This document shows positions 4,965-63,097 of a stretch of 64,000 nucleotides of DNA, in pieces. The translations under genes were made by a program, and so were the position numbers. Position 1 is the first letter of the stretch; every line of letters starts with the position of its first letter. Under the pieces are notes generated by a model. That model was not told the DNA's origin, searched no databases, and saw only the letters and a list, made by a program, of their open reading frames with translations. The DNA lies in sequence record MK250017.1. One strand, written 5' to 3'.

Positions 4965-4993
4965 ATTATATAATCTATAATTTAAAAAGTCTA
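4965..4993 (-). promoter_or_regulatory. Sigma-70-type promoter TAGACT-N17-TATAAT
   Basis: -35 at 4988-4993, -10 at 4965-4970, 17-nt spacer; upstream of the GOLLD-like RNA. Confidence 0.6.
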
Positions 4994-5182
4994 TATTTTA
5001 ATCAAAAAATATTTTATTTTTTTAATTACTTTATTAACTATATGTGTCTTTATCTTCTTTTAATTGATAAAATATAATTTAATTAAAAACTTAATAATTT
5101 AGATTATCAATATGTTTCAAATTTAAATATTATATATGATAATAGAATAATTGTCTATATTTTATAGAAAAAATTTTAAAAA

Positions 5183-5359
5183 TTATTTTAAACAATATTC
5201 TAAATCAAAAATAAAACTCCCTAATAATTCAATCTTATGTCTAATAAGTTCTGCTTCAAGATTAAATTTATGTTCTGAACAAAATGATAATTCAGATAAT
5301 AATTTAGTTCTTTCAGTTTTCCACTTATTTATTAAATCATCTTTAGATAACTCTTCCAT
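5183..5359 (-). CDS. Small hypothetical protein
   Basis: 58-aa ORF MEELSKDDLINKW.., below the track cutoff, in the minus-strand run. Confidence 0.5.
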   Translation of the reverse strand: MEELSKDDLINKWKTERTKLLSELSFCSEHKFNLEAELIRHKIELLGSFIFDLEYCLK

Positions 5360-5384
5360 AATACATTTTCTTTAATCTATTTCA

Positions 5385-5660
5385 TTATTTAATAGTAACT
5401 TTAATTTTTGAATCAGTTACTTTGCCATTAACAACAGTATTTATAGTATCAATAGAAATAGAATCAAGGCTCTTAATAAACATATTAGGTATCTTTACAA
5501 TTGTATCTACACTATCTCTTATCTGAATTGAATCTTTAGTAATATTGATAGTATCATGAATAGGTTTATTATTTGTTACATATCTTGGATTAATCCAAAA
5601 ATACTGAATAGCAACACCTACAATAATTCCTATAATAAATGTCCAAAAAATATGTTTCAT
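5385..5660 (-). CDS. Membrane-anchored hypothetical protein
   Basis: N-terminal TM helix, then DT/DS-rich repeats typical of Bacteroidetes proteins. Confidence 0.65.
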   Translation of the reverse strand: MKHIFWTFIIGIIVGVAIQYFWINPRYVTNNKPIHDTINITKDSIQIRDSVDTIVKIPNMFIKSLDSISIDTINTVVNGKVTDSKIKVTIK

Positions 5661-5680
5661 TTTATATTATAAATTAAAAA

Positions 5681-5890
5681 TTAAACTTTATTTATTAAAT
5701 CAACTAAATCATTATATGTTATCTCTTCATATTTTGTTTTATTTCTACTAATAAAAATAGGTTTATTTAATGATATATTAACATCTTTTAATATCTCATT
5801 CTTATCATTCTCTAAAACATACCAATGTGTTTGTTTATCTAATATTTTTCCAGAACTTGTCTGTCCTAATCCCAACCGTACTATTGTCAT
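5681..5890 (-). CDS. Hypothetical protein
   Basis: 69-aa ORF. Confidence 0.6.
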   Translation of the reverse strand: MTIVRLGLGQTSSGKILDKQTHWYVLENDKNEILKDVNISLNKPIFISRNKTKYEEITYNDLVDLINKV

Positions 5891-6425
5891 ATGAATATAA
5901 TATTTTTAATATTTGAAAAAATCTACCTTCAAAAAAGAAAGAAATNNNNNNNNNNNNNNNNNNNNNNNNNNNNNNNNNNNNNNNNNNNNNNNNNNNNNNN
6001 NNNNNNNNNNNNNNNNNNNNNNNNNNNNNNNNNNNNNNNNNNNNNNNNNNNNNNNNNNNNNNNNNNNNNNNNNNNNNNNNNNNNNNNNNNNNNNNNNNNN
6101 NNNNNNNNTGTTTTACCAAAAAGTCTACATTTATCTTAATTATTTTTTAATCGGATTAAAAATAATTTATAACTAATTAATAATCAATAATTTAAATAAA
6201 TTAATTTTCATATAAATTAATATAAAATAAAAATTCAGATCTAAATTACTTAAATTTAAATCTGAATTTTTAACTAATATAAAAAATTAAATATTATATA
6301 TAAATATCTATCTCAANNNNNNNNNNNNNNNNNNNNNNNNNNNNCAAGTTTCAAGAAAAAGTCTATTTTTTTACAAAATATTTTTAATAAACACTAAAAA
6401 TAATTTATAACTAATTGATATATAA

Positions 6426-7136
6426 TTATTTAAGGTATTCCATTACATCATTAAATGCTTTATTATATTCATCTTCTGATGAACTCTCTAATTTTTCATA
6501 ATATATACGTTCCTGTAATATCTCTTTAATATCTGCATATTCTCGTTTAATATTATATACAGGTTCACCATCAGACCAAGTCTTAACAATAACTCGAGTA
6601 ATATCTAAATATCCTTTATATACATTATCTAACCCATGAATTTTAATATATTCATATATTGGCATAAATGTTTCTTTTATCAATGATTCTTCATCATCTT
6701 TTGAAAGATTCATTTCTTTAATTTGATTTAGTTTTTCTGTATATTCTGCTTTATGAAATTTAAGCCTTAAGGTTCGATAACGTATATATGATGTCGGAAC
6801 AATAGGAACTATATTTGTTTCAGGAAAATCTGAACATAAAGGATAAATTTGATCGAATAACCAAATAATGTATTTGTTATTTACATTAAATTGATATAGA
6901 TTATAAGATTGACGTTTATCATTACTTAACTCCCATAGTTCCTCACTATATGGCATTACTGCAATATAAGTTTCATTCCATATAGAATTATCTAATTTAT
7001 CGATATGAATACTTCGTTCATTCGATCTATCTTTATTGATACAATATAATTTTACATCATCAGGAACAAGAATTTTATCTACATATGAATCATATGCAAA
7101 TCTCCAAATTTTATATTCTTTATAGTTTTTATTCAT
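6426..7136 (-). CDS. Hypothetical protein
   Basis: 236-aa ORF, TAG-free. Confidence 0.7.
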   Translation of the reverse strand: MNKNYKEYKIWRFAYDSYVDKILVPDDVKLYCINKDRSNERSIHIDKLDNSIWNETYIAVMPYSEELWELSNDKRQSYNLYQFNVNNKYIIWLFDQIYPLCSDFPETNIVPIVPTSYIRYRTLRLKFHKAEYTEKLNQIKEMNLSKDDEESLIKETFMPIYEYIKIHGLDNVYKGYLDITRVIVKTWSDGEPVYNIKREYADIKEILQERIYYEKLESSSEDEYNKAFNDVMEYLK

Positions 7137-7156
7137 TTTATAGAAATGTTAAATGA

Positions 7157-16955: not shown

Positions 16956-17050
16956 ATAAACAAAATAATTCTTATTTTTATTATTTATTCATTCTATATA
17001 TTTATTAAAAATGCAATTTAAAATAAATATTTAAATATGATATAACTATA

Positions 17051-24331: not shown

Positions 24332-24901
24332 TTATTTAAAAACTTTAAATAAACCCATAAATTTCTTTTGCTTCATCTCTTCAATTTCTTGTTTAAGATC
24401 TGTATTTTCATTTTCAAGTTCTTTATTCTTCTTCTTAATGTCGATATAAAGATTTTCAATTTGTTCAAGATCTTGCTTATAATAATTGAATGCATTTTGA
24501 TGTTCTTCTTTATTACAATGATTTATACATTTAACAAACATTTCAATAAGGAGAATAGATGATTCTTTTTGCAAATCTACTAACATTGCATTTTTTCTAT
24601 CAATGTCATTATCGAAATCGAGACCTTCATATTCTTGTGTTTTCTTTGCAAGAATTGCAGTTGATCTTATTTGATATTCATTAAATAAATCTTGAATAAA
24701 TTTTCTGATACTATTAATTATATCTATTTCTTCTTTTGTTTTACCTTCAAGATCTTTTGCATCCCAATTAATTTGAGAACATACATTTTCAGGATTTGTG
24801 CCAGCTTCTTTAATTGCATCAAGTTCTTCCTGTATATTACTTAATTCATTTTGAAATAATGATTTAATAATTTTATCTCGCTTTGTACTTAAATTTTCCA
24901 T
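24332..24901 (-). CDS. Coiled-coil hypothetical protein
   Basis: Heptad-rich C-terminus. Confidence 0.7.
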   Translation of the reverse strand: MENLSTKRDKIIKSLFQNELSNIQEELDAIKEAGTNPENVCSQINWDAKDLEGKTKEEIDIINSIRKFIQDLFNEYQIRSTAILAKKTQEYEGLDFDNDIDRKNAMLVDLQKESSILLIEMFVKCINHCNKEEHQNAFNYYKQDLEQIENLYIDIKKKNKELENENTDLKQEIEEMKQKKFMGLFKVFK

Positions 24902-24960
24902 CTTATAATTATTTACTATTATATAAATTATATAATTATTTTCTTAATATGTTTATTTTT

Positions 24961-27773: not shown

Positions 27774-28274
27774 TTATCGAGTAATAGAAATATTCAAATC
27801 ATCAAATACATTCTGATCTGCAAGAAGAATCCATCTATATTTTCCGTCAGCTAAACCACATTTTCCAACAATACAATTATCAGATGCATAGATATAGTAA
27901 TATTGCTCTCCTATACCTCTTGTTCCATATGATTTAATCCATTTTGACTCATCTATAAATTTATCAATATCAAAGATTTTTGTAACATTCTTATTATAAT
28001 TACCAAATATACAATACCAATTATAATCGTCATATTTCTCATCTATGACTTTTAATTTCATTTCCTTAATAACATCTAGTATTTTACTAAAAAGTGTCTT
28101 AGAAATGAAATCTGATGCCTTATATCGAGGATATTTATTAACAAGACTATTATCATTCATTGACGTAACAAATACTTTCCAGTTAACTGGATTAAAACAA
28201 CTCTTTGCTTGCTCCTCTCTTTTATTTGTTGTCTCAAATAATATATTCATCGTATCTCTTATCTCTTTATTCAT
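27774..28274 (-). CDS. Hypothetical protein
   Basis: 166-aa ORF. Confidence 0.7.
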   Translation of the reverse strand: MNKEIRDTMNILFETTNKREEQAKSCFNPVNWKVFVTSMNDNSLVNKYPRYKASDFISKTLFSKILDVIKEMKLKVIDEKYDDYNWYCIFGNYNKNVTKIFDIDKFIDESKWIKSYGTRGIGEQYYYIYASDNCIVGKCGLADGKYRWILLADQNVFDDLNISITR

Positions 28275-28305: not shown

Positions 28306-28334
28306 ATTATAATAATTAAAAATAAAAAAGTCTA
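28306..28334 (-). promoter_or_regulatory. Sigma-70-type promoter TAGACT-N17-TATAAT (overlaps a terminator stem)
   Basis: -35 at 28329-28334, -10 at 28306-28311. Confidence 0.6.
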
Positions 28335-28364: not shown

Positions 28365-29378
28365 TTATGCTTGTTTTTTATTTAATGCATAAAAATAATT
28401 CTTTAATTCAGAAAATGAAAAGAATTCTAAATAATTTAAACCATGTTTTTCTGCTATTTCTCTTTTCATAATATCTCTAGTTGTCCAAACATTAATAGCT
28501 GAAATATAATAATCTTTTTCTTTCGATCTCTTTTTCCATAAATTTAATTTCTTAATGTCGTCGGGATTATTTTTATCAAAACCATGTTTACCATGTGTCC
28601 AATGAAAATTACATTCAATATATAAATCATTATCTGCAATATAAAAATCACAAGCAAAAGGATATTCTTCTGATTTATATTGTCTTTTAATATCAGTATA
28701 TATTGTTTTTAAAAGTTCATATACTTTATCTTCTTCCTTTGAACATGTATGTGTTTTATGTTTCGTTTTAGATTCATGTATTTTGTCTATTGTTGATTGT
28801 AATTGTGTAGTNNNNNNNNNNNNNNNNNNNNNNNNNNNNNNNNCTTTTCTTTTTTCTTTTATAACTTCACATTTACCAACATTATCAACACCATACTTTT
28901 CTAGTACAGTTTCTTTACGTTTTTCCTTTACATAGTCACTAGCTAATGCCATTTCAGTACCATAACGTTCTAAATTCGTGGCTTTAATTTTATCCCATAC
29001 TTTCTATGATTTTGCAGGATTATCTACACCATAACGTTCAATATTTGTTTTCTTTATCTTTTCTTTAACACTTTCTAATTGAAATGGATTTGCAACTCCA
29101 TATTTTTTAATCATAGATTGCTTTTTCAGACCATATATACATTTAGAATTACCACAACTTTTGTGATATTTATAACCGTCACGTTTACATGGTTTTCCAC
29201 AAATATGACATCTTGGTACATCATTAGTATCATTTAATATACATAACAGTTTATCGATAATATCCATATCAGATTTATCGATAAACTGTGTATTTAAATA
29301 TTCAATAATATTAACAGGTATCTTATTTTTATTTAATGAATGCTCCTTATAATACTATTTTATATATTCATTATTCAT
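28365..29378 (-). CDS. Putative free-standing homing endonuclease (Zn ribbon, KYGV repeats, Vsr/PD-(D/E)XK-like C-terminus; TAG=Gln)
   Basis: Two track ORFs join through TAG; CHICG..CGNSKC, RYGVDNP repeats, CDFYI..IECNFHWTHG; contains an N gap. Confidence 0.7.
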
Positions 29379-30963: not shown

Positions 30964-30992
30964 ATTATAGTAAGTTAATCAGTATAAGTTTA
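30964..30992 (-). promoter_or_regulatory. Sigma-70-type promoter TAAACT-N17-TATAAT
   Basis: -35 at 30987-30992, -10 at 30964-30969; upstream of the polymerase. Confidence 0.5.
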
Positions 30993-36992: not shown

Positions 36993-38238
36993 ACCCAATT
37001 CCCAAAATCAAATTAGTAGCAGCAAACATCTTATCTTCAAGTTGCGCATAAATCATTCTTTGACGTTTCATATTGATAGAATCACCATAAAGAAGTCCAA
37101 TATGTGTATCAAGTACTTTATATCCCTTCTTATTAAATGTTCCACCAAATGTATTCCAAAGAAATTCATATGAACCCATCTTTACAAATTGATCATTTGC
37201 TTCTGAATCACCACAAATAATCTTTACAGGATCACCACTATCAGGACGGATAACTACTCGACCATTTCGACTCATAATCTGTTCCTTATACTTAGGTACG
37301 ATCTTTGTAATAAAATACCAGTAATCATAGCCGTCTGCTACAATAGAAATAATACCATCAGGAAATTCATCAAGCATTCTCTTAAAATAAATTTCATCAT
37401 CTGGAATACCAGAATCATTTGTTGCATTTGAACATTCCACTGAATGTTCTGTTGCAGGTACTGTAGCTGCAATTAATTCTTTCTTAGGATCTGCTTTATA
37501 ATAGTATTCAATCATTTTAATTGCAGGTACTGATTCAGAACCGCAAAATGATGTAAGATGTGCCATGCCTGAAGTGATTGTAGTTTCAAGAGAACTCATA
37601 CCTCTCATTGAAAAATCATGACACAAGAAATCAAGGTTAGACAAATCATTAGGATTATAAAAACCTGTTTTCATTGCATGTCTAACAAGTTCACGTCTAT
37701 AAACATCTGAAATTGTAGCGGATGTCATTGGTTGCCACAAAATATTTGAAAGAATAGACTCCAAATAATTAGTAAGCCAAGCAAAATCAGGATGTGTGTT
37801 TGTGATTGTCAAAACAGGACATCCGATTGGACAATATGAACCTTCAGGAAGTGCCTTAATTCTAATAGGGAGATAACCAAGCTTATGCAAAGCAATAATA
37901 TGATCTACTCCTACTTTCTTTGCAACTGCTTCACCAAGAAATGATGTAGTTAAATCAGTATATGTTTTTCTAACAGTATCTTCATCAAGGTTAAAGAAGA
38001 AATTATTAAACGTATTAATAAGATACTTCTTGATAAAATACTGAATACCAAATACAACTACACCTTCATTTGCCTCTGGGAGGTACTTATTTCCTCGTGG
38101 TGTAAAATTACTAAAAAGTTGTGTCATTCCCTTAGGATACATACAGTGATGACCAAGCTTGTAGCCATCAGTCATAAGCATTGCATTGAGAAGTATGTCT
38201 TCTACCATTACATGCTGAGAATCTTTTACGTTTGTCAT
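36993..38238 (-). CDS. nadV: Nicotinamide phosphoribosyltransferase, exon 1
   Basis: TDGYKLGH, HDFSMRG, VPATEHSV, IRPDSGDP, YGDSI motifs. Confidence 0.92.
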
Positions 38239-39968: not shown

Positions 39969-40985
39969 TTACATGATATATTGTAAAAGCATTCTTGTTT
40001 CTTCATCTTGTCCGAGTTTTTTATTAGCCTCTCTCAAAATCTAATTAACTCGTGTTTCTGTCATATTGTTTTCTTCTGCAATTTGCCAGGTATTTTTCTC
40101 AGGACGACCATTAATAGCATAGCATGCACAAACAATTTCACCATTTCTTTTACCCATAACTCTCTTGATATTATCTTCAAGTTCTCTTGTTAAATCTTCA
40201 TTTTCAAGACTACTTCCAGGCTCATTGAAAACATTATTTGTTGTCATATCACCTAATGTTACTTTAGAATCTCCATCATCTCCAACAGATTGATCTAAAC
40301 TATTTGCACGAGCATTTGCTTTCATCGTCTATACAAATGAATCATAAGTTAAATTAGGATGTTTCTTAACTAATACATCATAAATATCATCAATATCAGG
40401 TTCATAACCATTCTTATTAAATAAACGTTCTTTTACACGAGCAGCTTCACGAGCAATACTACCCATATTACGAGGAACTGCCATATGACCACCTACTTCA
40501 TCAACTGCCATCATAATCTCACGACGAATATACCAAATAGCATATGATACAAATTTTACATCTTTTTCTGGTGTACTTGGATCATATGTTTCAGCTGCTT
40601 TCATAAGTCCAATATTACCATATTGAATTAAATCTTCTTTAGGAATATTAAGATTTTTATACTTATTAACAACAGTAACAACAAACGGAAGATTTGCAGA
40701 AACTAATTTATTTTTTGCTGCCTCTACCTATCTCTTATTTGACGAATGCTGAATAATATCTGCAAGTTTGCATTCATCTTCATGTGTTAATCTTTGTTTC
40801 TTATTAATTGCTTTTAAATATGCTACAAATGATTTTGCTGTATTTTCATCCTATGTAATAGTAAAATCATCATGTAAATCCATATGCATTCCATTATTAT
40901 CTTCATTAAGAGTATTTCGTAATGAACGAGAAATACCTTCCATAAGGCTATTATACAATGCTTTCTTTTTATTAATTACTCTCAT
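39969..40985 (-). CDS. RpoD-like sigma-70 factor with N-terminal extension (TAG=Gln, 4 TAG)
   Basis: Region 1.2 YLKAINK..LTHEDE; region 2 LVSANLPFVV..DLIQYGNIGLMKAAETYDP..KFVSYAIWYIRREI; region 4 TETRVNQIL; 338 aa. Confidence 0.9.
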
Positions 40986-41040
40986 ATTTTATTTAATAAA
41001 TTAATTTCAATAATTTATTATATTTATCAATATATAAAAA

Positions 41041-42852: not shown

Positions 42853-42953
42853 TAGATGTAGGGAGACTTGAACTCCCAAATTCCATACCTAGAATACCAT
42901 GAAATAAACTCAAAATATTATTGAGTTGCGTTTACCCATTTCGCCATACATCT
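42853..42953 (-). tRNA. Class II (Leu/Tyr-like) tRNA-like gene with aberrant anticodon loop
   Basis: Acceptor AGATGTA/TACATCT + A73; D arm GGCGAAATGGGTAAACGC; T arm GGGAG-TTCAAGT-CTCCC; anticodon arm ACTCA-ATAATATTT-TGAGT; ~30-nt variable region. Confidence 0.75.
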
Positions 42954-43165
42954 ATAAAAAGGTAGTTTCTTATCCGAATGCAGTCTAACTACCAAACCTT
43001 GAGTATCACATTTCGTACGTTTCCCAGATATTGTGACATCTGCTTACTATATTACTATAATAAGTTAATCCTTGAATCACTTAAACCTAATTTAATAGGG
43101 ATACATGTCAATCCATGATTAAAAAGTCTTTAGCTTAACAATATTAAAAAATATCGCAAGGATTG

Positions 43166-43237
43166 CAGCCCTAATAAGATTCGAACTTATAACATCACAA
43201 TTAAATATTATGTGCTCTACCATTGAGCTATAGGGCC
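43166..43237 (-). tRNA. tRNA-Lys(TTT)-like gene with A33
   Basis: GGCCCTA/TAGGGCT, GCTC/GAGC D stem, CATAA-TATTTAA-TTGTG, ATAAG-TTCGAAT-CTTAT. Confidence 0.8.
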
Positions 43238-43324
43238 AAGGTCTTATTTTAAATTTCCACGCAATAAGACCTTAGATTTTTGTAGATATGTGTTCATAGT
43301 ACTTAAACTAATGCTTGTAAATAT

Positions 43325-43416
43325 ACTGACGTGTTAACCACTTCACCAATCGCCCATATATATTGTTTTTTGCTTTAATTGAGGGCAATACGGGAATCGA
43401 ACCCGTGTTGGTCAGT
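43325..43416 (-). tRNA. Circularly permuted tRNA-like gene (3' half 43382-43416 precedes 5' half 43325-43355)
   Basis: 3' half ACTGA-CCAAC-ACGGG-TTCGATT-CCCGT-ATTGCCC-T; 26-nt spacer; 5' half GGGCGAT-TG-GTG..CAC-G-TCAGT; acceptor 7/7 and anticodon stem 5/5 complementary. Confidence 0.75.
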
Positions 43417-43560
43417 AAAATTCATGATGTATCACGAATGAACTATGACAATCTAACATTTACTGTAATACTAAAGCTCTTGACTCAATGCTAATGCTAA
43501 AATCTAGGATTTTGTTTATGCTAAATGTAATCAAGCTAATGCTTTAGTCAATTTACATTA

Positions 43561-43589: not shown

Positions 43590-43652
43590 TTTTTATTCTT
43601 AAAATAATTTCACTTAAATAAATATCATAAATGAAATAGTTATCGTAACTAA

Positions 43653-47486: not shown

Positions 47487-47616
47487 TTAAAATAAATCAA
47501 TAATTATTTTATATATTTATTTTGTTATAATTATTTATTATAACATTATCATTTACCATAAAATTAAAGAGTATAACTTTTTAAATTATACTCTTTATTC
47601 TTTATTTTGTTTTTAA

Positions 47617-48246: not shown

Positions 48247-48334
48247 ATGTCATTAAATATATTTTATATATTTATTTTCTATATAATAAAAGAAAGAGTT
48301 AGATATTCGAATATCTAACTCTTTTATATTTTTA

Positions 48335-50230
48335 TTAAGAGAAATCACCACCGGTATCACCTCCACCAGTATCTGCAATTTCAGAACCACCAGATCCCAT
48401 ACCAGTATCACCACCAGAGAATGCTTCATCACCGCCAGAGAAGTCTCCTCCACCACCGAAGTCACCTCCACCGGTATCACCTTCAGCCCCGAATGAATCA
48501 TCAAAACCTGAACCTCCAGAATCACCGCCGAAATCCATTTCGCCTGGTGCACCATTACCTTGCTGTTCACCAACTTGTTTTCCCATTTCTTGGTGTTGTT
48601 TAATTATTTTGGCTTGTTCTAATCGTTCAATAATTTCGCCTTGCTTATATTTTTCATTAAGTGCAAAATCTTCATCAGACATACCTAGAAATTTCTCAAT
48701 AAGGAATTTCATACTAAAGAATGGTTTATTTTCACCTAATTGAATTTGTGCTAAAGTACCTATAATTTCAGCCCCCTATTTTAATGCAGTTCTTTCTTTT
48801 GCTTTAACAAATAAGTTTTCTTCATTAAATACAATACCTATACATTGTTTAAGCAATTCAGAATTAGCTAATTCTGGCATCATTAAACATATTTGCACCC
48901 ATAAAGGTTTTAACAAAATTTCACGATACATAACGCGAATACGACTAATAAATCTACTAAATGCATATTCCTCTCGTGTTATACTTGCATCATCTCCACC
49001 TAATGGATGTGCGCCATCAGCAGCAGGATCAATCATAAATCTATTTGCTGGAACTTTTGTTTCTAATATAAAACGTCTCCAAAAATATTTCAATGGTGTA
49101 ATATCACTTAAGTCATAACCTTCTGTAGGTATTTCTTCTATTGTCATCGAATTACCATCACGAATTGGGAAAAAATGAGTTTTGGAAAATGAAAAACGTG
49201 GTTGACCATTTACAACCATTTCACCAGATATTTCATCAACTGTTGTTTCTTCATTCCAATCTGCTTTTACTTCATTAACCTTTGCACGAGCTTTGTCCTA
49301 TGAAATATTACCTACTGGAATACCAACTTTAACACGTTTCTGTGAATTCATAATATTCCAAACCATTCTTGATGTTTCAAGTTGTGTTAACATTGTATAT
49401 GATCTTATTAATCCTTCTAGATAAGAAACTCGTGAATTTTCACCATACATACCTGTTGACCATGATATATATACAATATTTGAATCTGGTATTTTTCTTT
49501 CCAACTATGCATCACCTCTATATTGATACCATACTTTTACTTCTTTTCCTGTTTCTGGATCTATTTCAATATCAGGTTCAAGAGTTGCTGCATCCAATTC
49601 TCTCATACCTATAATACGTGTAGGTTTCATAAGATTATCAACAACAATTTCAAATGCCAAATATCCTTCAACTAAGAATTTTTTAAAATAATTCCATGCA
49701 TCATTTGATTTATCCCATCCATATGTAGAATATATAATCTTAAATGCTTTTTGACAATTTTTAATTAAATCATCTGCAGTTTCACCATTTGCACCTTTAT
49801 AATTAGTGTTAAGCTTTAATTTCAGAAGATTTAAATCTAACTATGCAAAATAATTGTTTTCATCTAATATTATAGTTTCATCTGAAATAGTATCAAGAAC
49901 AAAAGAAATTGTTTGTTGTGAAGCGAACTATCTTAACTATTCACGTCTCTATTGATATGATAAATCATAATATGCATAAGATTGTTTTGTATTTTTAGTA
50001 ATATCAACATACTATGAAAAAGAATTTTGATCCTAATTTAAACCATCGTTAAATGGGTATAATGAATCACCTGTATAATTATTTGTTTGAGCGGAACCTA
50101 AAGCTAATGATGTTTTAAGAATACTCTATGATGAATTTAAACTGAGAGAAGACAGATTAATAAGTGTATTGATTTTATTATGATCTGCTTTTCCTGGATT
50201 AAACTTTCTTGCTATATATTTTGTAGGCAT
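48335..50230 (-). CDS. Portal protein (T4 gp20-like; TAG=Gln, 10 TAG)
   Basis: Three track ORFs plus the N-terminal region join into 631 aa; YLEGLIR..QLE, KYFWRRF..KVP..RF, ITREEYAFSRFI; Gly/Asp-rich tail; AATAAATA at 50255. Confidence 0.9.
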
Positions 50231-50351
50231 TATTATGCTTTTATTTAGTTTTTATATTTATTATATATAAAAATAGGTAATATGTTTATGAAAAATACAT
50301 ATTACCTATCAAACAAAATTAAACAATTAAATATATATATTATGAAAAATG

Positions 50352-50744
50352 TGGAGACATCCGGAGTCGAACCGGAGTATTACTAACTTGTCAATAATAA
50401 ACTATCTACGTGCGTATTTCTTAATTAGTTTTCATCATACATTCTTAGGAGTTAAACAGTTTAATGTCGTAATCACTCTTATTGGACAAAAAGTATAGTG
50501 AGTTTTATTTAACAGAGAAAACACTCACCGAACTCCGTGGCGATGCTCAACTTACCTTGTAAGGAGCAAATGCTTCAATGGGTTTATATTACCAATCCTA
50601 CCGGATTAAGCTGCCATACGAAAATCAATTTCGTCGTCATTTAAATTTATTTGCTAAATTTCTTTGTATTACTACAAAAGGCTTTTAACTTTCCTACACG
50701 ATTTATTACCACATAATTAATAAGCAAAACCAAAAAATGTCCCC
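50352..50744 (-). ncRNA. ssrA: tmRNA
   Basis: 5' GGGGACA pairs 3' TGTCTCC (G3.U70); T arm CCGG-TTCGACT-CCGG; tag frame DDEIDFRMAA* at 50606-50638. Confidence 0.92.
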
Positions 50745-50762
50745 TAAATATTAATTACATAT

Positions 50763-50791
50763 TTTATATATGTAATTAATTAAAAAGTTTA
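50763..50791 (-). promoter_or_regulatory. Sigma-70-type promoter TAAACT-N17-TATAAA
   Basis: Directly upstream of the tmRNA. Confidence 0.55.
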
Positions 50792-51139
50792 CTTTTTCTT
50801 TAACTTTTTACCTGTTTTATAATAACGCTGTAACTTATTATTTAATACAGTATTTATCACATTAAGTCTATGATTTTCACTAATTAACTTATTATATTTA
50901 CTATATAATGTATTATATGATATATCAAAATCTTTAAGTATTTTCTCTTGTGCTTTAATTACATCATCTTGTAATAAAGACCTTTCATCCTGTGTTTTAA
51001 TTATATCATCATTATTTTTTATTATTGAAGTATATATAGTATATAGTTCTTCTCGTTTTTTATCAATATTATTACTATTCGGCGTAAAAATAGCACTTAA
51101 TATATTTGTAAAATAATCAGATAATTTCATAATTAACAT
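50789..51139 (-). CDS. Coiled-coil hypothetical protein
   Basis: 116 aa. Confidence 0.6.
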   Translation of the reverse strand: MLIMKLSDYFTNILSAIFTPNSNNIDKKREELYTIYTSIIKNNDDIIKTQDERSLLQDDVIKAQEKILKDFDISYNTLYSKYNKLISENHRLNVINTVLNNKLQRYYKTGKKLKKK

Positions 51140-51149
51140 TCTTATTATA

Positions 51150-51953
51150 TTAAACGAATATAGTTAATTCCATATTTTGTGACATTAAATTTCCAAATAC
51201 ATTCATAGGAAGTGTTTTTGAAAATGTATCATTAACATACAAATCAATATAATTTGCATAACATGATGACTTATTCAATTTATTTTTTCCTTTCTCTAGA
51301 ACTGTAATTCTACCATAAACAATATCACCTTCTTTAACATCACTTAAATAATTTGTCTTGATATGAATTCGTTTAACAATATATTTCGGTGTTGCTAAAT
51401 AAATATCTCCATTGTTTGGCGCATTATCAATTGCATCCCATTTTGCTTTTCTTCTTGCTGCATTCTTTTGTTGTCTCTTATTATATTCAGCAATAGCATC
51501 TTCTTCTGTTTCAAAACAACGATTCCTTGTATTAACATGTGGTACATCACACACAGAAAGAAGATAATATCCCTCTCTAATTTTATAATTATCATCCGCT
51601 TCTCTTACAAAACATACAGACCATTTGTCTGCAGAAGAATATCTTATAATTTCTGAAGCACCTCTAACTGCAGGTGAAATTTCTTTATTAAGCTTTACAA
51701 ATACAATACGTCTACTATCTTTTGATATAGGATCTACTGTATATAATGATTTACATTCATTATCTAATACTTCTTTCTTGATAAGAAATCCATAAATAGT
51801 TCTACTAAAACTAAAATAGTATGATGATCTCCCACTTTCTTCATAATTACCAAGATATAAATCTGTATTATCAATATAATATTCATCAGGAATATTTGAT
51901 AATGATTTATTATGGTCATATGAATTTATAAATGTATATGATTTTGCTTTCAT
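51150..51953 (-). CDS. Hypothetical protein
   Basis: 267 aa. Confidence 0.7.
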   Translation of the reverse strand: MKAKSYTFINSYDHNKSLSNIPDEYYIDNTDLYLGNYEESGRSSYYFSFSRTIYGFLIKKEVLDNECKSLYTVDPISKDSRRIVFVKLNKEISPAVRGASEIIRYSSADKWSVCFVREADDNYKIREGYYLLSVCDVPHVNTRNRCFETEEDAIAEYNKRQQKNAARRKAKWDAIDNAPNNGDIYLATPKYIVKRIHIKTNYLSDVKEGDIVYGRITVLEKGKNKLNKSSCYANYIDLYVNDTFSKTLPMNVFGNLMSQNMELTIFV

Positions 51954-51985
51954 AATTTCTATTTTTCTTTCATTAATTTATATTT

Positions 51986-51993
51986 CAAAGATA
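51986..51993 (-). promoter_or_regulatory. Bacteroidetes-type -7 element, nested in an AAAACT-N17-TATAAA promoter (51977-52005)
   Basis: TATCTTTG upstream of 51953. Confidence 0.7.
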
Positions 51994-52062
51994 CATAAAA
52001 GTTTTTAAAATAAAAAATGGAGACTATATGAATAATCTCCATTTAATGTATAATATCATTTT

Positions 52063-52281
52063 TTAACAATCTTCTACATTTGTAATAGATACCTTATTTA
52101 ATTCATCTTGCCAATTAATAACAAACTGTAAATTAAATAAATTATCTTCTACTAATTTCATATTATTAAGTCTCTTAACTTCATTATATAATGTAATTGC
52201 TTCTTTTACATTATTCTCCATTCTAATTGCTAAATCTGCAATTTCTGTGTATTCTTGCTTTAATATATCTTCTTTAATCAT
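52063..52281 (-). CDS. Hypothetical protein
   Basis: 72 aa. Confidence 0.6.
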   Translation of the reverse strand: MIKEDILKQEYTEIADLAIRMENNVKEAITLYNEVKRLNNMKLVEDNLFNLQFVINWQDELNKVSITNVEDC

Positions 52282-52332
52282 TTAAATTCTCTCACAATTT
52301 TTTTGATCGAAAAAGACAAAATATTATGTTGT

Positions 52333-52614
52333 TTAATTATCAGAGATATAATATTTAAACCCATTCTGTAATTTTGTTAACATATGTTTAATCTTAACAT
52401 CTCTAATTTCTGAATTTTTAATTACATTATATTGTCCTATTATAAGATCAATATAATTAGCAACAGCTTTAGCATCTAATTTATCAATAACTGAATATAG
52501 ATTTATCTCTGGTGTTTTTACTTTACTTTCATATAACTCACATTCTGTTTTATTAGTAAAAACTTTTCCATCATCTGCATAATATTCTGTCTTTATAATT
52601 GTCTTCTGTTTCAT
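52333..52614 (-). CDS. Hypothetical protein (YYADDGKVF..ECELYE motif)
   Basis: 93 aa. Confidence 0.65.
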   Translation of the reverse strand: MKQKTIIKTEYYADDGKVFTNKTECELYESKVKTPEINLYSVIDKLDAKAVANYIDLIIGQYNVIKNSEIRDVKIKHMLTKLQNGFKYYISDN

Positions 52615-52652
52615 AATTGTAAAAAATTAAAAATATTACTAATGTCATGTCG

Positions 52653-52724
52653 TTGGGGATCCGAGACTCGAACTCGGCCTAAGAGTTTTAGAGACTCCTG
52701 TACTGACCACTATACTAATCCCCA
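52653..52724 (-). tRNA. Amber suppressor tRNA (anticodon CTA), Gln-like
   Basis: TGGGGAT/ATCCCCA (U1-A72, G2-C71, G3-C70); loop CT-CTA-AA; canonical T arm. Confidence 0.92.
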
Positions 52725-52754
52725 ATACTATATTTTAATTTACATAACTATTAA

Positions 52755-53525
52755 TTATTCTATATAATCGCTTAATTTCTATTTGTAATGATAATATGTT
52801 GATTTACATACATTATATTTAGTTAAAAAATCTGATTCTGATATATTATTTACAATATCATTCTTCATATCTACTGTTAATTTACTGCAGCCATTAGAAT
52901 TAAATAACTATATTTTCTAATTATATTTAGATATTTTCTACATTAATTCTTGTTTATCACGTGATAATATATATCGTTTTTTAACTAAAAGATTACTGAC
53001 ACTACCTCTTGTAAAATTAACATTCATATCACGTTTTAATTGTTGTAATGATGTAGATGAAACAATATTCTTTGTATTTACATCATAACAATATATTGTA
53101 TGCCTTCCATCATTCTATTTTTCATATGATTTTTTCTAAACTATTAATTTCTATTCATCTGTGAATTTATATCCATCAATACCACCATCACCACCTTTTG
53201 TTTGATTATAACCAGTAGCTCCATAACTATTATATTTACGAATATACTATTTTTCTAATAGATCTAATTGTTGTTTTATATCAGACGTGATATAATTATC
53301 AAATGTTTTTAATATATATAATGAAAAGGAATCTATACCATATTTCTTAAATGCTTTATATATTGGCGCATTATATCTATTATTAACAGAATTATTAATA
53401 TGATGTAATAATCTTTTATGTAGATTTATACTCTAACCAATATAACACTTTTTATTTATATCATTCTAAATCATATAAATACCCGGACACTATGGTATAT
53501 TATTTATAATATCATCTTTACTCAT
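52755..53525 (-). CDS. GIY-YIG homing endonuclease, Seg-like (TAG=Gln, ~11 TAG)
   Basis: Absent from the track; GIYMI..YIGQSINL..R..LEKQYI..GYNQTKGG; 256 aa. Confidence 0.9.
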
Positions 53526-53557
53526 AATAATTTTTAATATTTAATAACCATATTTTG

Positions 53558-53631
53558 TAGCCCCACTCAGATTCGAACTGAGTCAGCGAAAGTTAGAGTT
53601 TCGAATGCTTAAACCATTACATCATAGGGCA
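53558..53631 (-). tRNA. Second amber suppressor tRNA (anticodon CTA), Gln-like
   Basis: TGCCCTA/TGGGGCT (U1.U72 mismatch); CGAAA-CTCTAAC-TTTCG; CTCAG-TTCGAAT-CTGAG. Confidence 0.92.
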
Positions 53632-53646
53632 ATAAAAATATAAAAA

Positions 53647-53997
53647 TTAAATATAATCTTTTCGTCCTGTTCCCGTTTCAGGATTCCATTTATAATATTC
53701 TTTTGGTAAAGTACCTTTACATGTATCAATTAATTTATAATCAGAAATATCAAATCCAAATTTTTGTATATATGTAATATCTGGTTTATTTATACCCCAT
53801 AAATAATAACCTTTTGAATTTTGAAATACATAATAAGTCCAAGTATTATCTATTTCTTCTTCGACTTTTACTTTCTTTTCTGTTTCATCAAATTCACGTA
53901 AAATTTCAATGTCATTTTCTGTAATCTTCATTCTCTTTAATTTCTTCGGAAGATTATTTGTATAACATTTTTGTCCTTTATATAAAAATTCAATCAT
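53647..53997 (-). CDS. Hypothetical protein
   Basis: 116 aa, TAG-free. Confidence 0.7.
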   Translation of the reverse strand: MIEFLYKGQKCYTNNLPKKLKRMKITENDIEILREFDETEKKVKVEEEIDNTWTYYVFQNSKGYYLWGINKPDITYIQKFGFDISDYKLIDTCKGTLPKEYYKWNPETGTGRKDYI

Positions 53998-54012
53998 TTA
54001 ATATTCATATAT

Positions 54013-54041
54013 ATTTTATGAAAAAATGCGTTAAAAGTTTT
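54013..54041 (-). promoter_or_regulatory. Degenerate sigma-70-type promoter AAAACT-N17-TAAAAT
   Basis: Upstream of the unit containing both suppressor tRNAs. Confidence 0.4.
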
Positions 54042-54149
54042 AAATATTCTTAATTATTTTTAAATATTTTTAACTAAGTAATATAAAATATTTTTTGCAT
54101 TTAACATATATTATAACATGAAATATTAATAATGTCTAAAATATTTTTA

Positions 54150-54626
54150 TTATTTTATTTTTTTAATTAACTTTTCTGATTTATCATATAGAGATTCTGT
54201 TTCACTAATCATTTTCATATATTTAGATTTAAATTCATCTGTAGATAATTCAATTATAGTAAGATTAAGAAATTCATTTAAATTATATGATAATTGTTTA
54301 TGTGCATCAAATTCAAACCATATATCATCAAGATATGAGGAATCATTATATTTAAAAAACAATCCATTTAAATATACTCTTGTATCATGTTTATCACACG
54401 TTACAAATTGTTCATATACATGAATATAAACAGCATTATTATATGAACGTTCTTTTGATATACGAACATATTTACCTCTCAAATCTCGTTGGGAAATAAG
54501 TAATTCATTTTTTAATGTTTTATATTCATATGCTTTTTCATATGTTTCATTCTCTAATTTCTGAAGATATTCTATATTTCCTGTTATATCTGGTTTATGT
54601 AGAATATTTTGTAATTGTTTATTCAT
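54150..54626 (-). CDS. Hypothetical protein
   Basis: 158 aa. Confidence 0.7.
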   Translation of the reverse strand: MNKQLQNILHKPDITGNIEYLQKLENETYEKAYEYKTLKNELLISQRDLRGKYVRISKERSYNNAVYIHVYEQFVTCDKHDTRVYLNGLFFKYNDSSYLDDIWFEFDAHKQLSYNLNEFLNLTIIELSTDEFKSKYMKMISETESLYDKSEKLIKKIK

Positions 54627-55710
54627 ACTTAATTATTTCATATAAATTTCTATTGTTATAGTTATTAATAAAATTGTCACAATCTTTCTGTGTAATATTA
54701 TTAATTGGTATAAATATATCATTTTTGCGATATATTAATTGCATTGATTCTGGTATTCCTAAACTTTTCTCTAATGCTTTCTTCTTTTTTTGTTCTTTAA
54801 TATATAAGTCTAATTCTTTTTCTGTTTTGATATTTTTCATGGGAAAAGGATAACGACATAATTTTTTTTCTTCTTCTAAATAATCGTCACCATTATATAT
54901 TTCAAAATTATCCGCTTTAGACCATATTCTGATATTTGATTTATTAAACGGTAATAGCTTATTATCAATACAATAATCAATAAATGTTTTAATATTAGCT
55001 GGATAATATAATTCAGGTAATTTATATCTTTTATATCTATTATCTTTATTATCATTTAAACAATATAAACGTTTAGTTTTTTGAAGTTCAACTATTGTAT
55101 TTCCCTTTAATAAATCTTTATTAATCTTTAATATAGGAATTGACATAAAAATAACTTGGTCATCTTCCCAGGCAACATTATATCCGTTTTGTTTTTCTAA
55201 TTCTTCATCAGCTTCATTAGAATTCATAACATATGAATGTTCCTTCCATAATATTCTGGATTGCCTACAATATACTTGAAATACACCAAAATCTAATTTA
55301 ATAATTCTGAATGTATATGGACCATTATTAGGTCTATTTGCTATTTCTTTATTATATTGTTTTATTACTTGTATATATTCCTTATATTTTAAAGAATTAA
55401 TTGTATCTTGTATCGCAAAATATCCTATATTAACTTTGCTTAATTGTGGACAATCTTTAACGAATTTTTGTATATCGAATAAACGGTCCAAATCCCATGA
55501 ATAACTATTATCTTTCCACTCAGCTTCAAAATTATTTTGTTTTAAGTTATCATATATATCTTTACGAATATCATTTTTAAATTTTGTACAATAATCTTTA
55601 ATTGTATGACAACTCCAATATTTTTTAATTGTGGTAATTTGTTTTTGAGATGGATGCTTTTTTATCACCCATCTCAACCATTCATTTATATCTATAATTT
55701 TATTATCCAT
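54619..55710 (-). CDS. Hypothetical protein
   Basis: 363 aa. Confidence 0.75.
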   Translation of the reverse strand: MDNKIIDINEWLRWVIKKHPSQKQITTIKKYWSCHTIKDYCTKFKNDIRKDIYDNLKQNNFEAEWKDNSYSWDLDRLFDIQKFVKDCPQLSKVNIGYFAIQDTINSLKYKEYIQVIKQYNKEIANRPNNGPYTFRIIKLDFGVFQVYCRQSRILWKEHSYVMNSNEADEELEKQNGYNVAWEDDQVIFMSIPILKINKDLLKGNTIVELQKTKRLYCLNDNKDNRYKRYKLPELYYPANIKTFIDYCIDNKLLPFNKSNIRIWSKADNFEIYNGDDYLEEEKKLCRYPFPMKNIKTEKELDLYIKEQKKKKALEKSLGIPESMQLIYRKNDIFIPINNITQKDCDNFINNYNNRNLYEIIKYE

Positions 55711-58784: not shown

Positions 58785-58858
58785 TATTAAAGTAACTATT
58801 TCTTTATTCTATTTATTGATTTTTAATAAATATATAAAGTTTATTTTAATTAAAGAAG

Positions 58859-59577: not shown

Positions 59578-59949
59578 TTATTTTTCTTTTGTAAGATCCT
59601 TCAAGTTGAAGATCTTAGTCTTTAATGGTTCAACTTCTTTACCATCTATTACTTCATACATAGAAAATACATATTTATCAGTAAAACCTTGACATTTCCC
59701 CAATACAACACCTTTAAATATTTTTTCGGATGGTTTATGAAAAACTTTCATTTTTATTTTTTCATTATCTAATAGTCTAGATTGTCTATCTAAAAATGAT
59801 TGAGTTAATACATAATCATCTTCAACTTCATTTGATGTGTCATCTTCATTTTCATTTGATGTATCTTCAGTATCATCTTCATTTTCTACATCCTGAAGAT
59901 ACATCATTTCTTCTAAATCTATATTAGCTTCGTCGTACATGTTAAACAT
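59578..59949 (-). CDS. Protein with acidic N-terminus
   Basis: 123 aa. Confidence 0.65.
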   Translation of the reverse strand: MFNMYDEANIDLEEMMYLQDVENEDDTEDTSNENEDDTSNEVEDDYVLTQSFLDRQSRLLDNEKIKMKVFHKPSEKIFKGVVLGKCQGFTDKYVFSMYEVIDGKEVEPLKTKIFNLKDLTKEK

Positions 59950-60824: not shown

Positions 60825-61370
60825 TTACATTTTTAATATATCTTGCATATTAACTGGTTCTGTATTGGTATTTTTAGATTTTCTTATTATTTGTTTCACT
60901 TGTGGTTGTTCAAAATAAATACCACTTTTATTATATTTACCTTTATCATATGCTCGTTCAATAGCTTTACGAACTCTACGCTTTGTTTTACCATCCATCA
61001 TATAATGATGCTGCTGATAATAAAGTTCACCTTGCTGATACATCATAGATTCAATAAACTGCTTTCTCTGCTCATGCTTTTGCTTTGTTTTTTCTCTTAT
61101 ATCTGATTCTGATTTTGCTTTTGCAATAGCTGCTTGTGTAATAAGAGTATTCATACCAGATTCTTCATTTAACGTCTCTACTTGCTTATCTAAATTATTA
61201 TCAATAGGTGTACCTGGAATTACTGTATTACCATCATCATATGCATATGATCTTTCAATTCTATCTTGTACTTTATCTTTAGATAACAACATTTTATTTA
61301 ATGTTTCATTATCAATAACTGAACCATTCTCAGTAATATAATTATTTAATGTGTTACTATATGCGGGCAT
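60825..61370 (-). CDS. Hypothetical protein
   Basis: 181 aa. Confidence 0.7.
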   Translation of the reverse strand: MPAYSNTLNNYITENGSVIDNETLNKMLLSKDKVQDRIERSYAYDDGNTVIPGTPIDNNLDKQVETLNEESGMNTLITQAAIAKAKSESDIREKTKQKHEQRKQFIESMMYQQGELYYQQHHYMMDGKTKRRVRKAIERAYDKGKYNKSGIYFEQPQVKQIIRKSKNTNTEPVNMQDILKM

Positions 61371-61394
61371 AATTTATTAATTGTATTTTTTAAT

Positions 61395-61781
61395 TTAAAA
61401 TGAATGTATATTATTATCAAGACTTGTCATTTCAGATGCTTTAAATTTACCATAAATCTTATTCCATCCTTTTGATAAACCGTTACATAACATACTGGTA
61501 TAATATGCAAATGGATTACTAAATCGTTCTGGATCAAAGCTTCGCCAATACATTGCAACATCCAACATTGCTGTCTGTATACAATCTTCCTTATCCTCTT
61601 GACATTTATAATGTTTCTTTTTTGCTAAATTTTCAGCAATTAACTAAAGCATGACAACAGCATTATATGTAAGTTCATCTCTCTATTTTGAAAGAACTAT
61701 TTCTTTCATCAACTCTTTATTCTACACATATGGTTTTCCACCTTTAGTTTTAATACCTTCTACTTTACTAAAATCTTCCAT
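61395..61781 (-). CDS. Late-transcription sigma factor, T4 gp55-like (TAG=Gln, 3 TAG)
   Basis: Absent from the track; PYVQNKEL (cf. HYVNNKEL), LIAENL, FDPERFSNPFAYYT (cf. FDETKYKNPHAYIT); 128 aa. Confidence 0.85.
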
Positions 61782-61809
61782 GGTTTTTAAATAAAAATAG
61801 CTATTTCTT

Positions 61810-61838
61810 ATTTTACTAAGAAATAGCTAAAAAGTTTT
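61810..61838 (-). promoter_or_regulatory. Degenerate sigma-70-type promoter AAAACT-N17-TAAAAT
   Basis: About 30 nt upstream of the gp55-like ATG. Confidence 0.4.
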
Positions 61839-61845
61839 AATAAAT

Positions 61846-62931
61846 TCATTTATTAATTGCTTCCAAATGTTCTTTTTCATTAGGTGTTAAATTATCAGGA
61901 ATCAAATAATGTACGCATACAAAATAATCTCCTCTTTGATTCATATCAGGTCGTTTAAGACCTTCACCAGATAATCGCATAACTGTACCTTCTTTAATAC
62001 AACTCTGCAACTTTATTGTTTTTGATACACCAGAAGGTATATTAACTGTATATGAACAACCAAGTAATAGTTTATAATAAGGTACATGAATATGCTCTAT
62101 TACATTCAAACCATCAACTTGATATTTGTTTGTATCAAATTTATAATCAGCTATAGCAATAAAATTACCATTCTGCCCAACTGATTTCTTTGATTCTGAT
62201 CCTTTACCACTATATACTTTATATTCACCATTCTGAATGCCTGTATTAAATTCAATTTCAATCTTTACTTCTTGCTTTTCAAATCCAGAACCACCACAAT
62301 GATTACATTTATTTTCTACATAAAAACCTGTTCCATGACATAATGGACAAATTTCTTCTTGAATTGAAAATGTTCCTCTTCCTATAAGAGACTGGTGAAT
62401 AATTTTTCCTGCACCATGACACTTTGGACATGTTTTCTGTCCAGTTCCACCAGCACCATGACATGACGGACAACGTACATCTCTCTTATATTTAACAACC
62501 TTCTTAATACCATTAAATATATCTTCAATAGTAACAGGAATTTTCATTTGAATATCTCTGCCTGGTTGAACTTGATTTCTCTGTTGTTTAGCACCTCCAA
62601 AACCGCTAAATCCTCCAAATGGATTAAATCCTCCAAATGGATCAAAACCCGATCCACCAAATGGATCAAAACCTGAACCACCAAATGGATTTTGCTGACC
62701 ATTTTCATCACCATATGTATCATAATTCTGTTTCTTCTGTGGATCACTCAATACTTCATATGCATGATTCACATCCTTAAATTTCTCTTCAGCTTCTTTT
62801 ACTTCAGATGGTGATTTACCTTTCTGCATATCAGGATGATATTTCTTTGAAAGTTTTCTATATGCTGTCTTTAAGTCTTTCTCATTACAATCTCTAGAAA
62901 CACCTAAAATTTCGTATAAGTCTTTTGCCAT
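61846..62931 (-). CDS. dnaJ: Chaperone DnaJ
   Basis: J domain HPD, G/F region, CxxCxGxG repeats. Confidence 0.95.
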   Translation of the reverse strand: MAKDLYEILGVSRDCNEKDLKTAYRKLSKKYHPDMQKGKSPSEVKEAEEKFKDVNHAYEVLSDPQKKQNYDTYGDENGQQNPFGGSGFDPFGGSGFDPFGGFNPFGGFSGFGGAKQQRNQVQPGRDIQMKIPVTIEDIFNGIKKVVKYKRDVRCPSCHGAGGTGQKTCPKCHGAGKIIHQSLIGRGTFSIQEEICPLCHGTGFYVENKCNHCGGSGFEKQEVKIEIEFNTGIQNGEYKVYSGKGSESKKSVGQNGNFIAIADYKFDTNKYQVDGLNVIEHIHVPYYKLLLGCSYTVNIPSGVSKTIKLQSCIKEGTVMRLSGEGLKRPDMNQRGDYFVCVHYLIPDNLTPNEKEHLEAINK

Positions 62932-63068
62932 ATTTAATAACTATATAATAACATTTAAAATAAAAAGGGAACTGAATACAATCCTCTTGTATACGTTCCC
63001 TTCTTCAAATACTTTTACTCACTTTTTATAGTTTTCATTTATTCTAAATTAAAATATTGTATTCTATT

Positions 63069-63097
63069 ATTTTATAGAATTTTTAGAAGTTAGTCTA
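63069..63097 (-). promoter_or_regulatory. Sigma-70-type promoter TAGACT-N17-TAAAAT (overlaps the dnaK terminator)
   Basis: -35 at 63092-63097, -10 at 63069-63074. Confidence 0.5.

Follow-up and report, generated by a model that had tools for sequence, protein, structure and literature searches.

The 64,000-nucleotide (nt) stretch of record MK250017.1 analysed here, called the window throughout, belongs to the TAG-recoded Prevotella phage Lak-A1 and is 100% identical to MK250015 (541,664 base pairs, bp) over the stretch tested. It carries a set of sites, class S, in which a -35 hexamer such as TAGACT stands exactly 17 nt upstream of a TATAAT-like -10 box. An earlier examination of the bare letters (the sequence-only reading) had described TAGACT-N17-TATAAW as a third promoter class, and a class distinct from both the Bacteroidetes sigmaA type (PMC7366714) and a T4-late-like type is indeed supported. 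On the evidence of the sequences, TAGACT represents the G-variant within a single wider phage-specific promoter class, whose consensus from leave-one-out counts is (T>A)A(A=G)AC(T/A)-N17-TATAA(T>A). As judged from the genomes compared, the reality of class S is established by enrichment, placement and conservation; all further steps we infer, and most plausibly the class depends on a sigma factor made by the phage.

Lak phages are uncultivated, have genomes of ~540 kb and are common in human and animal guts. To our knowledge their gene regulation has not been described. That they encode sigma factors is already known (PMC6784885, PMC7824862), and in the Lak phage literature we found sigma factors mentioned and no description of promoters. 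The window has a G+C content of ~25% and contains two transfer RNAs (tRNAs) with the anticodon CTA. It was compared with G001, a 331-kb virus record ~97% identical to it, and with the complete genome of Lak-B1 (MK250020), which is ~80% identical to the window and was taken whole as an independent test set. Genes were called by a longest-open-reading-frame (ORF) rule with TAG read as glutamine (Gln), so that "intergenic" is approximate and ORFs shorter than 55 amino acids (aa) are missed.

Pairing, spacing and conservation of the class S boxes

TAGACT-N17-TAWAAW occurs six times in the window against 0.18 expected, a count reached in 0 of 100 shuffles, and all six matches lie on the minus strand (first bases 4993, 28334, 38338, 43589, 59779 and 63097). 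When spacings from 8 to 27 are scanned, N17 yields these six matches and every remaining spacing yields 0 or 1. The TAGACT hexamer by itself is not enriched in the window (19 versus 24.6 expected), and the signal therefore resides in the pairing of the -35 and -10 boxes. Restricting the count to the intergenic DNA of the window leaves five matches versus 0.04 expected, with a maximum of 1 in 300 dinucleotide-preserving shuffles. The pairing of TAGACT with TAWAAW at exactly 17 nt on the minus strand, as first described in the sequence-only reading, is thus borne out, and the search against a shuffled intergenic background that it called for finds the enrichment at this spacing. Its statement that every assessable intergenic TAGACT carries the downstream box was too broad: the five pairings are real, and the proportion is five of six, since the minus-strand hexamer at 42982-42987, which separates two tRNAs, lacks a -10 box. 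Minus-strand hexamers at 6122-6127 and 6360-6365 are not assessable, their -10 positions falling in runs of N, and were left unread. The match at 59779 had correctly been omitted; it lies within an ORF, is not conserved in Lak-B1 and is rejected here as a promoter.

The class is wider than the TAGACT by which the sequence-only reading had named it. When every hexamer 17 nt upstream of TATAAW is compared with its occurrence at other spacings, TAGACT, TAGACA, TAAACT and TAAACA rank top in both G001 and Lak-B1, and TAGACT is one of four equally enriched -35 variants. In leave-one-out counts the second -35 position is A in 59 of 78 sites and T in 10; at the third, A is counted 34 times and G 25 times. 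Conversely, the sole strongly enriched hexamers 17 nt after TARACW are TATAAT (30 versus 3.8) and TATAAA (19 versus 2.6). The combined pattern TARACW-N17-TAWAAW has 59 matches in G001, 52 of them intergenic, versus ~12 at each other spacing, and 97 in Lak-B1 versus ~20. Spacers one nucleotide shorter or longer are at background (N16 and N18 giving 11 and 12 versus 59 in G001, and 14 and 18 versus 97 in Lak-B1); class S needs its -35 box at exactly 17 bp. Against shuffles, the intergenic sites number 37 versus 1.09 in G001 and 60 versus 1.9 in Lak-B1.

Several further properties characterize these sites. The last -10 position is T or A, no extended -10 TG is present, and CG is not enriched just upstream of the -10 box. 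A T-tract adjoins many -35 boxes: at least four T in the 5 nt after TARAC are found at 18/55 and 35/83 sites (33-42%), versus 131/1649 and 245/2608 (8-9%) for all TARAC genome-wide. Bacteroidetes sigmaA promoters have TAnnTTTG at -7 and TTTG near -33 (PMC7366714), and class S sites are without either element.

Both boxes are better conserved than their surroundings. Over the 44 G001 sites that can be aligned with Lak-B1, identity reaches 91% in the -35 box and 95% in the -10 box; the spacer (76%) and the flanks (81%) stay below this. The Lak-B1 counterpart of 4993 reads TAAACT-N17-TATAAT, its boxes kept and its spacer diverged, and that of 38338 reads TAAACA-N17-TATAAA, with two compensating 2-nt indels preserving N17. 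Compensating indels likewise hold the spacing at 17 in the promoter of the transfer-messenger RNA (tmRNA) gene (50791), where both boxes are kept, and in the suppressor-tRNA promoter; the two sites of that unit, 54138 and 54041, have the counterparts TAGACT-N17-TATAAA and AAGACT-N17-TAAAAT. The counterpart of 61838 reads AAAACA-N17-TATAAA, and the promoter at 28334 is 100% identical in Lak-B1, spacer included.

These data bear on the proposal that the sites are not promoters and represent terminator hairpins, remnants of a repeat family or chance matches in AT-rich DNA. TAGACT does form a hairpin arm at 28334, where it doubles as the 3' arm of the upstream gene's terminator, and at 63097, and several TAGACT sites lie within repeated cassettes. 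However, none of these origins would readily account for a 30- to 100-fold excess over shuffles at a single spacing, for the survival of 48/52 sites after removal of near-duplicates, for boxes that are conserved while the spacer drifts, or for sites that are oriented to genes, with the -10 box mostly ending 20-40 nt ahead of the start codon. We consider a non-promoter origin very improbable. The site at 63097 is a case apart. The pairing reported there is present and its promoter status is doubtful: in Lak-B1 a compensatory change gives GGTCT..AGACC and the -10 position reads TATATA, and because the hairpin is kept in this way it may be the hairpin that is conserved.

The TAGACT sites head stretches without a sizeable ORF more often than TAAACW sites do, with over 150 nt separating them from the following ORF in 9/15 cases in G001 and 15/22 in Lak-B1, versus 7/30 and 12/49 for TAAACW. 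Since two full sigma genes exist in these phages, this difference could reflect two readers, one sigma serving TAGACW at RNA genes and promoter cassettes and the other TAAACW at protein genes, or the two acting on the same sites at different times. Yet the orthologous sites 4993 and 38338 switch between TAGACT and TAAACT or TAAACA from Lak-A to Lak-B, which argues that the variants are interchangeable, and the spacing and -10 box are identical in all four -35 variants. A division of labour of this kind appears improbable to us, and we treat class S as one class.

Repeated cassettes are present at G001 69694, 69936, 176745, 226231 and 176938, 226433, and at the two partly N-masked hexamers of the window named above. 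In one type a TAGACT promoter with a palindromic spacer is joined to a conserved ~55-nt leader ending in ATG, and a second cassette type has a hairpin at the transcript start. The more distant relatives G002 and G003 contain a cassette of related kind. The repeated units of promoter and leader resemble mobile promoter cassettes.

Class S sites in the window

Within the window class S precedes the tmRNA gene, a tRNA cluster, the suppressor-tRNA unit, the genes for DNA polymerase, nicotinamide phosphoribosyltransferase (NAMPT) and a gp55-like sigma, and several small genes (Table 1). Near matches with the same spacing had also been proposed in the sequence-only reading, and of these the sites at 30992 and 50791 (both TAAACT) and at 54041 and 61838 (both AAAACT) hold up. 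The last three are conserved in Lak-B1, and the Lak-B1 counterpart of 30992 is not alignable. The sites at 57484, 52005, 33221 and 15133 are doubtful; 52005 overlaps a host-type promoter, 33221 is just 3 nt from an ATG and 15133 is a terminator stem. At 50288 the -10 box overlaps a late-type AATAAATA, which leaves the promoter class ambiguous.

Table 1. Promoter sites, motifs and genes discussed here, in window positions unless another record is named.
Feature	Position	Strand	Remarks
Class S promoter TAAACA-N17-TATAAA	2920-2948	-	25 nt before ATG of gene 2679-2894
Class S promoter TAGACT-N17-TATAAT	4965-4993	-	followed by ~1.4 kb without an ORF of at least 55 aa
Class S promoter TAGACA-N17-TATAAT	5129-5157	-	motif match
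Class S promoter TAAACA-N17-TATAAT	24927-24955	-	25 nt before gene 24332-24901
Class S promoter TAGACT-N17-TATAAT	28306-28334	-	31 nt before gene 27774-28274
Class S promoter TAAACT-N17-TATAAT	30964-30992	-	29 nt before DNA polymerase gene 29387-30934
Class S promoter TAGACT-N17-TATAAA	38310-38338	-	before NAMPT gene 36940-38238
Class S promoter TAGACT-N17-TATAAA	43561-43589	-	heads conserved leader and tRNA cluster
Class S match TAAACA-N17-TATAAT	50260-50288	-	29 nt before portal gene 48335-50230 (10 TAG)
Class S promoter TAAACT-N17-TATAAA	50763-50791	-	-10 box ends 18 nt before tmRNA 5' end
Class S promoter TAGACA-N17-TATAAT	54110-54138	-	heads suppressor-tRNA unit; better site than 54041
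Weaker class S promoter AAAACT-N17-TAAAAT	54013-54041	-	suppressor-tRNA unit
Weaker class S match AAAACT-N17-TAAAAT	61810-61838	-	before gp55-like gene; overlaps hairpin
TAGACT-N17-TAAAAT, doubtful promoter	63069-63097	-	TAGACT is 3' hairpin arm
Chance match	59751-59779	-	inside ORF 59578-59949; not conserved in Lak-B1
Class H cassettes	first bases 1094, 9636, 12823, 32421, 39035, 39897, 42746, 51993	-	conserved cassette match
Class L motifs (window examples)	41021-41028, 36867-36874, 47514-47539, 48269-48276, 58810-58832; 43617-43624 (+), 33255-33262 (+), 17022-17029 (+)		
Late-type GATAAATA motif	41021-41028	-	between terminator hairpin and RpoD-like sigma gene; conserved in Lak-B1
RpoD/RpoS-like sigma gene	39969-40985	-	regions 1.2 to 4; in-frame TAG at codons 45, 86, 219, 315
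tRNA cluster downstream of promoter 43589	42853-43237	-	tRNA-Lys 43165-43237; 101-nt tRNA 42853-42953
tmRNA gene	50349-50744	-	Rfam RF00023, 54 bits
Two amber-suppressor tRNAs (CTA)	52652-52724, 53557-53631	-	flank homing-endonuclease gene with 11 TAG codons
gp55-like late sigma gene	61395-61781	-	phrog_234, E = 9e-11
SigW-like sigma gene	G001 180214-181164; MK250015 298379-299326		~62 kb beyond window end

RNA evidence takes the form of contig-level depth, with contigs from four runs placed on positions 49800-55700. The tmRNA contig has a depth of 400-500 versus 5-60 nearby in run X9, and in run X11 the depth of the contigs rises in a step over the spacer 53965-54588, which bears the promoters. 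The high-depth X11 contig ends in Illumina adapter at 53965, in the first ORF of the suppressor-tRNA unit; this end falls ~40 nt away from both predicted starts, and RNA processing or an artefact may have produced it.

A leader of ~320 nt (43238-43560, minus strand) separates promoter 43589 from tRNA-Lys; its promoter-proximal ~120 nt, all that was aligned, are ~95% identical to Lak-B1; an Rfam search gives tRNAs only and no other family. The 101-nt tRNA of the cluster scored no better than the E-value threshold, and ARAGORN did not report it. The stretch of 1.4 kb that follows promoters 4993 and 5157 (3591-4964, minus strand), in which no ORF of at least 55 aa was called, matches no Rfam family; within it lies a ~45-nt element that recurs at three places in Lak-B1. 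Homing or HNH endonuclease genes at 28365-29378, 35617-36939 and 52755-53525 are TAG-rich (2, 8 and 11 codons) and adjoin the DNA polymerase gene or sit between the suppressor tRNAs. Translation of the gp55-like gene probably begins at Met34 of the long ORF, which is supported by an alignment with Lak-B1 that is conserved from that ATG onward; three in-frame TAG codons follow this start.

Gaps of N in the window were judged from alignment coordinates only, window versus G001. The span flanking 28812-28843 is 67 nt in both records and is therefore continuous and in frame, and 32425-32445 falls inside a single alignment (6227 versus 6229 nt) and is likewise continuous. The gaps at 5946-6108 and 6317-6344 lie in a span, 5944-6344, of 401 nt in the window versus 352 nt in G001. 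ORFs drawn across runs of N are no evidence of genes, and none of the scored promoter sites is close to a gap.

Candidate sigma factors and the switch in genetic code

G001 and the complete Lak-B1 genome each encode two full sigma-70-family proteins and one gp55-like protein. One of the full sigmas, of the extracytoplasmic function (ECF) type, matches the NCBIfam SigW model at 2e-21, and its only PDB match is Bacillus subtilis SigW. It is readable in the standard code in all six relatives examined, any TAG falling within the last few codons, and its operon is headed by a full host-type (class H) cassette. TAGACA-N17-TATAAA stands 13-14 nt before its ATG in both G001 and Lak-B1, and in G002 AAAACT-N17-TATAAA is found upstream of the gene. 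The sigma-4 recognition helix, NESTVKNYLYKGKE, is invariant down to 41% identity, and relatives with the same helix have GAAAC/AAAAC(T)TTT -35 boxes with T-tracts, 17-18 bp before TAnAAT. The SigW -35 consensus, which these boxes resemble, is tGAAACnTTTt, SigW-like -10 boxes are of the CGT type, and autoregulation is typical of ECF sigmas (PMC5758882). Because the ECF sigma can be read in the standard code, lies in a host-type operon, has its own class S promoter and retains an invariant helix, we favour it, with a little better than even confidence, as the factor that would read class S together with host core RNA polymerase. A 164-aa tail-anchored membrane protein, conserved in Lak-B1, is encoded directly after the ECF sigma gene (G001 181175-181669); it has no family match and may be a candidate anti-sigma factor.

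The sequence-only reading had instead assigned these promoters to the RpoD-like sigma encoded in the window, altered regions 2.4 and 4.2 giving the TAGACT/TATAAT specificity. The motifs it quoted, IRREIM and TETRVNQ, are present and align to IRQAIT and TRERIRQ of RpoD. This sigma is full-length, with regions 2, 3 and 4, and the positions that read bases (Q437, T440, R584, E585, R588) are changed. A TATAAT-like -10 at 17 bp from a -35 hexamer is also the geometry of group 1/2 sigmas. In Lak-A1, however, the protein can be made only if four TAG codons, of which codon 45 is the first, are read as Gln; class S promoters precede the suppressor tRNAs, and dependence of class S on a sigma that itself needs suppression would be circular. 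The four codons align to Q, E, Q and Q in the Lak-B1 sigma (198324-199337), which has no TAG, and packaging of the RpoD-like sigma in the virion would remove the objection from timing. Its gene is preceded by a terminator and the conserved late-type motif, not by an H or S promoter. The R588-equivalent is N in Lak-A and L in Lak-B despite an identical -35 consensus, and the lack of an N16/N18 excess, the lack of an extended -10 TG and the T or A at the last -10 base also count against it. Fragments G002 and G003 (41% and 22% complete) contain related promoters with ECF and gp55-like genes, and no RpoD-like gene. Both sigmas occur in every Lak A, B and C record, so that presence or absence does not separate them. 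As stated, the assignment to the RpoD-like sigma is not supported; it is the weaker candidate, and we consider it unlikely as the reader of class S. One of its TAG codons corresponds to a Gln aligned to RpoD Q589, in the -35 recognition helix.

A host factor could in principle serve in place of a phage sigma, either an alternative (ECF) sigma of Prevotella, of which Bacteroidetes have many (PMC7366714), or sigmaA diverted by a phage appropriator comparable to AsiA/MotA of T4. Against this stand the phage's own ECF sigma with a class S promoter in front, and the -10 box TATAAT, which is unlike the TAnnTTTG of sigmaA (PMC7366714); judging from the phage sequences, we regard it as distinctly improbable, and the phage ECF sigma is retained as the preferred reader.

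The two other promoter classes place class S in a wider context. Class H is a host-type cassette of ~45 nt ending in GTATCTTTG, which matches the Bacteroidetes sigmaA -7 box TAnnTTTG (PMC7366714); the cassette is laid out as a T-run, ATTTrGAATAAAA and then TGTATCTTTGTATTG. An "AAAGAT-N17" signal was rejected, being the reverse strand of this cassette. There are ~32 intergenic copies in G001 and ~50 in Lak-B1, and the first gene behind them is TAG-free in 45/46 cases in Lak-B1 (p = 9e-9), 28/31 in G001 and 8/8 in the window; the genome-wide share of TAG-free genes is 63-65%. Class L, (A/G)ATAAATA-N4-AA, is T4-late-like and without a -35 box. It has 129 sites in Lak-B1, mostly 20-30 nt before an ATG, with TAG-rich genes behind them (29% TAG-free), and is probably read by the gp55-like sigma. 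TAG codons per 1000 amount to 0.1-1.1 behind class H, 4.7-7.2 behind class S and 11 behind class L, and the intermediate density is unchanged when class S is split by overlap with the late motif. The order H < S < L suggests early, middle and late classes.

These observations can be combined into a three-step scheme. Host sigmaA would first read the class H promoters and so express TAG-free early genes, including the ECF sigma operon. The ECF sigma would then drive class S promoters at its own gene, the amber-suppressor tRNAs, tmRNA, other tRNAs, replication genes and the gp55-like gene. In a third step the gp55-like sigma, whose mRNA needs TAG to be read as Gln, would drive class L promoters at TAG-rich late genes, among them the RpoD-like sigma gene. 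The cascade would be interlocked with the code switch, since the gp55-like and RpoD-like sigmas would be translatable only once TAG means Gln, and recoding would act as a middle/late checkpoint. We put this coupling forward tentatively, as an attractive scheme with somewhat less than an even chance of being correct.

Several points weigh against the ECF sigma and the cascade built on it. The class S -10 box, TATAA(T/A), is not the CGT-type of SigW-like ECF promoters and resembles a group-1 -10, and half of the Lak -35 boxes read GAC, not the canonical AAC. The RpoD-like sigma has kept the melting residues F427, Y430 and W433. Some relatives with the ECF sigma (G003, L032) show weak enrichment of class S-type sites, and a number of class S matches stand ahead of TAG-rich genes, the portal gene among them. 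The search for sigma genes covered 61% of a Lak-A-type genome (G001) and one complete Lak-B genome. RNA contigs on 49800-55700 demonstrate presence and give no start sites. Finally, partnership of the 164-aa protein with the ECF sigma is not supported, the predicted complex having scored 0.00, which is evidence neither way.

The conservation of the consensus across Lak clades provides a first regulatory map of these phages, in which three promoter classes track TAG usage. For class S it supplies concrete templates together with two candidate sigmas, and it becomes testable whether the timing of the lytic programme is set by stop-codon recoding. For Bacteroidales, whose own polymerase does not respond to classical -35/-10 promoters, class S may in addition be a source of orthogonal promoters and sigma factors.

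Comparison with known promoter systems

Class S resembles the SigW-type ECF promoters of B. subtilis (tGAAACnTTTt ... CGTA; PMC5758882) in the T-tract that follows its -35 box, in keeping closely to its consensus, in its constant spacer length and in that the candidate sigma gene is itself preceded by such a promoter. The AAC-type -35 core is matched in part, Lak having RAC, and distant phage relatives use GAAAC itself. It differs in its -10 box, which is TATAAT and not CGT(A/C), and in the Lak -35 element TA(A/G)AC, where G is as common as A; the phage ECF sigma moreover has an N-terminal extension of ~100 aa. The sigma70 promoters of E. coli and Bacillus (TTGACA-N17-TATAAT) resemble class S in having hexamers 17 bp apart, in the TATAAT box and in four of six -35 positions. 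Class S departs from them in having A and not T at the second -35 position and A or G at the third, in showing no tolerance for spacers of 16 or 18 bp, and in accepting T or A as the last -10 base. The primary sigma of the host phylum does not use sigma70-type -35/-10 promoters (PMC7366714).

T4 late promoters consist of an extended -10 element, TATAAATA, without a -35 box, and are read by gp55. The Lak phages have a gp55-like gene and, in class L, promoters without a -35 box, and the gp55-like gene stands behind a promoter of an earlier class as in T4. It is class L that forms the late-like set, however, whereas in class S a -35 box with constant spacing is required. Jumbo-phage group 2 has been named beside T4 late promoters and gp55 (PMC7824862).

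Phage sigmas that redirect the host core polymerase are well known from SPO1, T4 and phiEco32 (PMC13401047, PMC12276001). The order proposed for Lak, with host sigma acting early and a phage sigma then acting on middle or late promoters of its own consensus, is like that of phiEco32 gp36 and SPO1 (PMC12276001, PMC13401047). The phiEco32 consensus is a different one, AATGTA at about -11.5, and Lak differs from both phages in its three sigma-like genes, its Bacteroidetes host and its link to recoding. Class S would thus be a phage-sigma promoter class of a known general type, and its possible coupling to recoding the more novel aspect of the system.

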